64,000 bases of DNA, taken from Macrostomum lignano. Lineage: Eukaryota. Positions 36,364-36,663 of this stretch are shown here, piece by piece; position 1 is the first letter of the stretch, and each line of letters starts with the position of its first letter. The translations under genes were made by a program, and so were the position numbers. The stretch covers positions 434,001-498,000 of the forward strand of contig NIVC01000104.1 in the NCBI GenBank assembly GCA_002269645.1, written 5' to 3'. Under the pieces are notes generated by a model. That model did not search any database, was not told where the DNA came from, and was given only the letters and a program-made list of their open reading frames with translations.

Positions 36364-36663
36364 TCAAGGACAGTGGCAGCAGTAGCAGCGGCCGCCCAGC
36401 AGACTGTGGCTGTAGGACCAGCGCCGGGACCAGCACGCGCTCAGCCTCTTGCACATGAGGTCGCGCTTCTCCCAGTTGTTGTGCCAGCAGCCGGCGCCCC
36501 TGACGCCGTCGTACTTAGCGCAGGAGAACATCGTGTCCAGCTTGTTCAGGCCGTAGTTGATGATCTTAGTGATGTCCACCGAGATGTCCCAGTTGACCTT
36601 CTGCTCCGACGGCTGCACCATGAATGCCGCCAGTCCAAGGAAAATCAGGAAAACGCACTTCAT
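36364..36663 (-). CDS. Small secreted cysteine-rich cationic peptide (99 aa), family unassigned
   Basis: Signal peptide MKCVFLIFLGLAAFMVQPSEQ; 8 Cys in the mature part; GC-rich coding-like composition; acceptor CAG one base before ATG; upstream donor GTAAGC at 36922; TATAAA at 37013-37008; AATAAA at 36296-36291. Confidence 0.85.
   Translation of the reverse strand: MKCVFLIFLGLAAFMVQPSEQKVNWDISVDITKIINYGLNKLDTMFSCAKYDGVRGAGCWHNNWEKRDLMCKRLSACWSRRWSYSHSLLGGRCYCCHCP

Follow-up and report, generated by a model that had tools for sequence, protein, structure and literature searches.

What is the short, cysteine-rich open reading frame (ORF) that occupies positions 36364..36663 on the minus strand of a 64,000-nucleotide stretch of the Macrostomum lignano genome (assembly GCA_002269645.1, contig NIVC01000104.1, positions 434,001 to 498,000; the whole stretch is referred to below as the window), and what might its product do? 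The original prediction, made from the DNA letters, described a novel, eight-cysteine, Trp/Arg-rich secreted peptide and suggested an antimicrobial or toxin family. We find that the frame is a genuine M. lignano gene, that it is coding and under strong purifying selection, and that, judged by profile and motif matches, it belongs to a conserved, unannotated family represented in a flatworm, nematodes, a springtail and a dipteran-like insect. Our preferred reading, to which as a whole we give a probability of roughly 0.45, is that the product is a secreted extracellular binding module, most likely acting in innate defence by binding a microbial surface component. The coding exon and the parts of its product are the following, in window coordinates.

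36364..36663, minus strand: coding sequence, single coding exon (ORF list and translation; match to P0001 100%, to BOX15_Mlig017780g1 98%)
36601..36663, minus strand: predicted signal peptide, approximately residues 1–21, MKCVFLIFLGLAAFMVQPSEQ, cleavage site approximate (hydrophobic core at residues 3–16)
36523..36600, minus strand: N-terminal segment, residues 22–47, putative amphipathic helix, ITKIINYGLNKLDTM (hydrophobic moment; family conservation)
36367..36522, minus strand: eight-cysteine core domain, residues 48–99, with the motifs C-x-KYDG, CWHNNWEKRD, RWSY and GGRCYCCHC (family alignment A4; predicted beta-alpha-beta-beta)

The ORF runs uninterrupted through 99 codons to a TGA stop, and its translation is MKCVFLIFLGLAAFMVQPSEQKVNWDISVDITKIINYGLNKLDTMFSCAKYDGVRGAGCWHNNWEKRDLMCKRLSACWSRRWSYSHSLLGGRCYCCHCP. 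The eight cysteines of the mature part are spaced C-x10-C-x11-C-x5-C-x15-C-x-C-C-x-C and end in the tail GGRCYCCHCP, exactly as the original prediction had given them together with the signal peptide and the amphipathic segment; a ninth Cys lies within the signal peptide. Residues 3–16 are hydrophobic in the manner expected of a signal-peptide core, with Kyte-Doolittle means over nine residues of 2.2–3.1, and most family members carry comparable hydrophobic N-terminal segments. A secreted product with a mass near 9.4 kDa is predicted. Taken as a helix, the stretch DISVDITKIINYGLNKLDTMF is amphipathic: its hydrophobic moment reaches 0.47, and 99.4% of shuffles fall below it. The 52-residue cysteine domain contains 4 Trp and 6 Arg and has a net charge of +6 and an isoelectric point (pI) of 9.1, which, with the signal-peptide-like start, bears out the description of the protein as secreted, cationic and Trp/Arg-rich.

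Because the window holds 49 ORFs of at least 130 amino acids, the length of an ORF is by itself no proof of coding. The coding status of the minus-strand frame follows from its GC content at third codon positions (GC3), an excess of synonymous differences, a low ratio of nonsynonymous to synonymous substitution rates (dN/dS) and its family of homologues. GC3 is 0.90 in the coding sequence, and the flanks have 33–45% GC. 'Hypothetical protein BOX15_Mlig017780g1' of Macrostomum lignano shares 98% identity with the protein. Of the 13 nucleotide differences that separate the window copy from this other M. lignano copy, 11 are synonymous (dN/dS 0.04, binomial p 1.6e-6), with zero changes in the cysteine domain. 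Against a relative on contig L001 (65% protein identity), dN/dS is 0.2 overall and 0.15 in the cysteine domain. An ORF of 131 amino acids on the plus strand (36301-36696), longer than the gene, was rejected as an antisense shadow; in comparison with the other copy, 12 of its 13 differing codons are nonsynonymous. A second family copy in the window was looked for as well and rejected, as both tblastn and a six-frame search with a hidden Markov model (HMM) gave one copy only.

The family was delineated by an exhaustive profile HMM search, seeded with the three closest sequences, over 1.84 billion cluster representatives. This search returned 41 matches at E<=1e-3, from which two spurious repeat proteins (P0020 and P0043) with a weak match only to the N-terminal part of the profile were rejected, leaving about 39 related protein clusters. 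Alignment A4, which comprises 34 domains including the window protein, yields the family signature ...SC[SD]K[YF]DG..xCWxN[DN]WxKRD..C...[WF]SY...GGxC[YF]CCxC. Along the chain, the signal peptide is often followed by ..IPxDAVxYAxxKVDxxF-S-C-S-K-Y-D-G and then by x-A-x-C-W-x-N-[DN]-W-x-K-R-D-x-x-C, a short variable loop with C4, R-[WF]-S-Y and finally G-G-x-C-Y-C-C-x-C; the N-terminal stretch ..IPxDAVxYAxxKVDxxFSC is conserved in many members. In mature numbering, C2, R48, C5 and C6 are invariant across A4, and C1, D49 and G72 are nearly so. The four motifs that define membership, in the order [FL]-[ST]-C-x-[KR]-[YF]-D-G, C-[WYF]-x-[ND]-[ND]-W-x-[KR]-R-D, [WF]-[SD]-[YF] and G-G-x-C-[YF]-C-C-x-C, all occur in the window protein (FSCAKYDG, CWHNNWEKRD, WSY and GGRCYCCHC), which also has the hallmark N-terminal signal peptide on a protein of about 80–130 residues. 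A search of the window ORF with the A4 profile (hmmsearch) scored 94.4 bits at E 5e-28, a value to be read with the window protein itself being 1 of the 34 profile sequences.

Named members outside the flatworm comprise the nematode proteins WR25_04783 of Diploscapter pachys, PRIPAC_88933/50617 of Pristionchus pacificus and a tandem-domain protein of P. fissidentatus, as well as two tandem-domain proteins of the springtail Folsomia candida; all named members are labelled 'hypothetical' or 'uncharacterized'. One further member lies on contig L006 and is probably from a dipteran-like insect, because the alpha-mannosidase beside it is most similar to dipteran sequences (a sciarid at 58% identity). 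Two further members come from runs with adjacent accession numbers and probably belong to the same sequencing project. Contig L008 (Logan SRR18067544), from a run whose accession adjoins that of L006, carries two family paralogues at 620-1042 and 2269-2571, with 1.2 kb between them. The domain is contained in a single open reading frame at every examined locus with an intact frame, and it is used in more than one architecture. Tandem forms, known from Folsomia and Pristionchus among the named genera, have 2–4 domain copies in the family as a whole, with no dibasic sites between the domains. On contig L011 (JGI 3300081626, 184-1149), which is genomic and has a short intron upstream, a trypsin-like serine protease carries the family domain at its C-terminus in the same frame and the same last exon; the AAHC, DLAL and GDSGS motifs leave the His, Asp, Ser triad of the protease intact, and the N-terminal helix segment is kept in the fused domain. 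The novelty claimed by the original prediction stands as far as characterised families go, none of which was matched, although the protein is not a lone one and belongs to a conserved unannotated family across several phyla.

A Pfam scan of the window protein, 34 relatives and 8 further multi-domain members gave nothing above noise, and searches of PDB sequences, whether by the window protein or by the profile of the family, produced a single chance match (IF2 at E=1). A full-text literature search for gene identifiers, motif strings and run accessions returned no relevant paper, the matches to motif strings being degenerate-nucleotide strings. The statement of the original prediction that the protein could not be placed in a known family thus holds at the level of Pfam, PDB sequences, Foldseek against PDB and viral structures, and the literature searched. 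HMM and structure checks along the lines it had proposed (here Pfam, and Foldseek with an AlphaFold model) turned up no match to a characterised family that would speak against it.

An AlphaFold model calculated on the 34-sequence alignment superseded a first model based on 3 sequences (pLDDT, the predicted local distance difference test score, 56). In mature numbering, the predicted core consists of a strand at residues 39–42 (GCWH), a helix at 45–54 (WEKRDLMCKR), a strand at 62–66 (RWSYS) and a last strand at 73–77 (RCYCC). The pattern in which cysteines are lost across the family suggests how they may be paired. C3 and C7 are both present in 22 sequences and both absent from 9, and 3 have only C7 (Fisher 4e-6); C4 and C8 are both present in 28 and both absent from 5, and 1 has only C4 (Fisher 2e-5), the counts in each case ignoring shared ancestry. 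The cross combinations show no association. Because these cysteines are lost together, the data imply probable C3–C7 and C4–C8 disulfides. The four-cysteine tandem domains retain C2, C3, C6 and C7, which tentatively points to a C2–C6 and hence a C1–C5 disulfide. The amphipathic segment appears to be part of the domain itself, as its N-terminal helix, since it abuts C1 without a linker or processing site, is conserved in many members and is kept in the protease fusion. For the same reason, and with no big-defensin model matched, the two-module likeness to big defensins noted in the original prediction appears superficial.

Taken together, these features suggest the following mechanism. After removal of the signal peptide, the N-terminal amphipathic helix would pack on the beta-alpha-beta-beta core. 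One face of the last strand (C-Y-C-C-x-C) would be tied to the core helix through C3–C7 and C4–C8, and the other face to the N-terminal loop and first strand, with C1 and C2 bonding C5 and C6. The conserved residues other than cysteine (the aromatics and Asn/Asp after C2, the helix Arg-Asp, the [WF]-S-Y of strand 2 and the Gly-Gly pair) would form a specific ligand-binding surface and make the protein an extracellular binding module, one that the family employs singly, in tandem arrays and attached to a serine protease. Its role would most likely lie in innate defence, through recognition or binding of a component of microbial surfaces in the way of cysteine-stabilised defensin-like and chitin-binding peptides, and not in the unspecific lysis of membranes. 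A specific binding module seems to fit better than a membrane-active peptide or a fast-evolving toxin because of the purifying selection, the conserved polar and aromatic residues, the variable net charge and the modular use of the domain. The step from binding to defence is the weakest of the proposal. Defence is the leading guess because few species have named relatives, duplications are local, the organisms with family members live in microbe-rich habitats and the flatworm protein is cationic and Trp/Arg-rich.

Several observations weigh against the reading as a defence module. The mean pLDDT of the model is moderate at 66.5 overall, with values of 75–89 over mature residues 41–80, and the N-terminal helix is predicted at mature residues 12–26 with pLDDT <50. 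When the 34-sequence model was compared with PDB and with viral structures (BFVD) by Foldseek, which performs poorly for domains of such small size, no match fell below E=1 (best PDB match E 5.6), and because no similar fold was returned the defensin-like topology is without independent support. The disulfide assignments rest on presence/absence counts that take no account of shared ancestry. Family net charge varies between -2 and +10 around a median of +3, several members being neutral or acidic. Most members other than the named ones come from Logan, ENA and JGI assemblies, and a cysteine-poor member from a foraminiferan transcriptome may be contamination. Finally, it is unusual for an antimicrobial peptide to be so strongly conserved between phyla and to be present, as in M. 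lignano, in one copy per locus; both features would equally suit an endogenous ligand.

That last point leads to the alternative of a signalling ligand (a hormone, cytokine or neuropeptide-like factor) acting on a conserved receptor, which we consider unlikely. The strong purifying selection, the polar surface residues conserved across phyla, the small size and secretion of the protein and the single copy per locus in the 64-kb window are all what such a ligand would lead one to expect; on the other hand, named relatives surfaced in five species only, no Caenorhabditis or Drosophila name occurs among the members whose source was looked up (those genomes were not searched directly), and the tandem forms without dibasic processing sites, the protease fusion and the local tandem paralogues in one genome are awkward for it. 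Lower still we place a classical membrane-active antimicrobial peptide or toxin, in which the domain or its helix would disrupt membranes or block ion channels. The M. lignano protein itself looks the part, being cationic (+6 in the core, pI 9.1) and Trp/Arg-rich with an amphipathic helix, its tail resembles the C-termini of defensins and mytilin, and the habitats of the member organisms are rich in microbes. This picture does not extend to the family, where charge falls to neutral or acidic values in several members and where specific polar and aromatic positions, not general charge, are conserved; dN/dS of 0.04–0.2 is low for toxins and for most antimicrobial peptides, and the animals with named members are not known to be venomous.

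Improbable too, and less favoured again than a membrane-active peptide, is a protease-inhibitor-like or structural/matrix domain, as in mucus, eggshell, adhesive or reproductive secretion. Small disulfide-rich domains, single or in tandem, are typical of inhibitor families, and tandem forms are present in this family. M. lignano makes many gland-specific secreted proteins according to one study (PMC5977470). However, no inhibitor family in Pfam or PDB was matched. The most conserved region is polar and aromatic, and the reactive loops of inhibitors are usually variable. Reproduction-related genes of M. lignano are described as fast-evolving in another report (PMC7336406), unlike the window gene. 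The notion that the ORF is non-functional, a chance ORF, pseudogene or repeat fragment, could appeal to the satellites between which the gene sits and to a 2-bp deletion in the annotated copy BOX15_Mlig017780g2, but it is effectively refuted by the 11 synonymous differences of 13, the homologues in other phyla, the GC3 of 0.90, the conserved promoter block and the transcriptome-derived gene model. We therefore retain the defence-related binding module as the preferred reading.

The structure of the gene was examined by comparison of the M. lignano copies. The BOX15_Mlig017780g1 allele is present on three contigs of GCA_002269645.1 (L002, L003 and L010). The copy at 1501-1836 of L010 (NIVC01003819.1), annotated as BOX15_Mlig017780g2 and situated 0.8 kb from the contig end, equals the g1 allele except for the 2-bp deletion, which follows codon 28 and is either an assembly error or the mark of a broken allele. 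The window copy differs from the g1 allele by 4% in the coding sequence. Identity drops to 74% across the block formed by promoter and exon 1, and the intron does not align at all. Such a pattern of similar coding sequence and divergent flanks would be expected for duplicated subgenome copies of the polyploid M. lignano. As 'Mlig' gene identifiers are derived from a genome-guided transcriptome assembly (PMC5730564), the near-identical annotated copy has transcript support. Mlig017780 was not found in the supplements of M. lignano expression papers, the coverage of which was partial, so that this has no bearing on expression. In addition, the 225-residue P0005 is a frameshift-ridden prediction with two M. 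lignano-type copies nearly head to tail, which may have arisen from a noisy long read or a chimeric sequence, or may reflect a true tandem duplication present in a different assembly. The features outside the coding exon are as follows.

37007..37013, minus strand: TATAAAT box (TTTTCTATAAAT invariant between the two M. lignano copies)
36923..36980, minus strand: inferred non-coding exon 1, about 58 nt (block 74% conserved with the other copy)
36665..36922, minus strand: inferred 258-nt intron of the 5' untranslated region (UTR), GTAAGC...CAG (sequence reading; the flanking exons align between copies, the intron does not)
36291..36296, minus strand: candidate poly(A) signal AATAAA, 68 nt past the stop (the other copy has an 11-nt gap instead)

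The 5' end of exon 1 is approximate, having been placed about 30 nt downstream of the TATA box. The intron would have its GT donor at 36922 and its AG acceptor at 36665, one base before the ATG, so that one base of 5' UTR remains in the coding exon; on the Logan contig of the relative (L001) an AG acceptor likewise lies directly before the ATG. Since many M. lignano mRNAs are trans-spliced (PMC5730564), the acceptor could serve trans-splicing rather than cis-splicing. The AATAAA is regarded only as a candidate because it is absent from the other copy, and ATTAAA at 36219-36224 is an alternative candidate. A gene with TATA box, leader exon and intron is therefore plausible and supported in part: of the complete compact gene put forward in the original prediction, the ORF and the conserved TATA and leader block stand, and the poly(A) signal, missing from the other copy, is a candidate only. 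About 60 nt upstream of the TATA box, at 37074-37084 on the minus strand, the perfect palindrome GTCACTGTGAC is invariant between the copies, as is TGATGTGTGAATTT near it, and both are candidate promoter elements.

The gene is surrounded by repeats. A 32-bp satellite, CACCCATGCATTCATCACTCATGATTCACTAT, occupies 34923-36193 with 39.7 copies at 95% matches and starts about 170 nt past the stop codon of the gene. It also follows the other M. lignano copy, and because the repeat follows both copies its association with the gene predates the duplication. Upstream, 37416-38082 is a (CTGT)n array of 166 copies, 38578-39099 a (CTCTC)n array of 104 copies and 39813-40500 a GC-rich minisatellite with a 47-bp unit; a CTGT array is also found near the other copy (L002 1-1245). 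Further away, plus-strand ORFs at 15703-16815 and 18053-19387 match a PHD-like zinc finger, zf-HC5HC2H (E 4e-11), and FYRN plus FYRC (E 4e-17 and 8e-22), which suggests that the window holds, at about 7–19 kb, the 3' portion of a gene for a histone methyltransferase of the KMT2/trithorax type.

The interest of the gene lies in a family that is missing from Pfam and PDB, yet shared by flatworm, nematodes and arthropods. Few immune effectors of free-living flatworms have, to our knowledge, been characterised. Should the domain prove to serve defence or recognition, the host-defence domains of invertebrates would gain a new scaffold, one whose compact, disulfide-locked framework might be of use in peptide engineering; should it be an endogenous ligand, it would point to a conserved signalling system so far undescribed. 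A more ambitious claim, which we hold to be doubtful, is that the protein is the founding example of an extracellular domain family that has gone unrecognised, has a disulfide framework of its own and extends over flatworms, nematodes, springtails and insects. The domain would then serve recognition in the innate immunity of invertebrates in modular fashion, as a stand-alone effector, in tandem arrays and for the targeting of serine proteases. If true, this would constitute a new class alongside defensins, macins and clip domains. As M. lignano is amenable to RNA interference and stable transgenesis, function is directly testable.

Among known systems, the domain may be likened by architecture alone to clip, hevein and peritrophin-type chitin-binding domains, with modular use alone, in 2–4 tandem copies and fused to a trypsin-like protease, and with conserved aromatics; there is no sequence or HMM similarity to them, and clip domains are N-terminal to the protease, whereas the family domain is C-terminal in L011. 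Big defensins combine a globular hydrophobic N-domain with a six-cysteine beta-defensin-like domain, and the order of a hydrophobic or amphipathic N-part and a cationic cysteine-rich part is common to both; here, on the other hand, a single predicted helix of about 15 residues abuts C1, the core has eight cysteines in another framework, and neither Pfam nor PDB gave a match. The macins (hydramacin, theromacin, neuromacin and mytimacin) are likewise secreted invertebrate peptides with 8–10 Cys, cationic, Trp-containing and scattered across phyla. However, their cysteine spacing differs from that of the window protein, and no Pfam, PDB-sequence or Foldseek match was obtained, hydramacin included; the macin model is presumed present in the Pfam library.

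The cysteine-stabilised alpha-beta (CS-alpha-beta) defensins of plants and insects, together with ASABF of nematodes and mytilin/myticin of mussels, are small secreted proteins with 3–4 disulfides, and the order beta-alpha-beta-beta is predicted here as well. In the defensins the C-x-C of the last strand is bonded to a Cys pair of the helix; here C7-x-C8 is present, and the co-loss of C3 with C7 and of C4 with C8, in counts that ignore shared ancestry, would fit a comparable bonding of a Cys pair at or just after the predicted helix. Gly precedes the strand cysteines in both. In the defensins the helix carries a fixed CxxxC, whereas the window protein has C-KRLSA-C (x5). The original prediction was thus right that CxxxC is lacking from this protein, although its closest relative, P0003, has x3 and the family ranges from x2 to x5. 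Defensins also have a separate strand 2 with G-x-C bonded to an N-terminal Cys, whereas here the predicted strand 2 (RWSYS) is without Cys, G-R-C5 lies on the strand of C6–C8, and all four C-terminal cysteines (C-x-C-C-x-C) share that one strand. An additional conserved N-terminal helix is predicted here, and no defensin was matched by HMM, PDB sequence or Foldseek; we also know of no occurrence of the WxN[DN]WxKRD and [WF]SY motifs in defensins. On the predicted model, the domain resembles the CS-alpha-beta defensin fold as the nearest concept, with two of its motif features absent, and among secreted miniproteins stabilised by disulfides, a kind already known, it would appear to represent a new family with a cysteine framework of its own.
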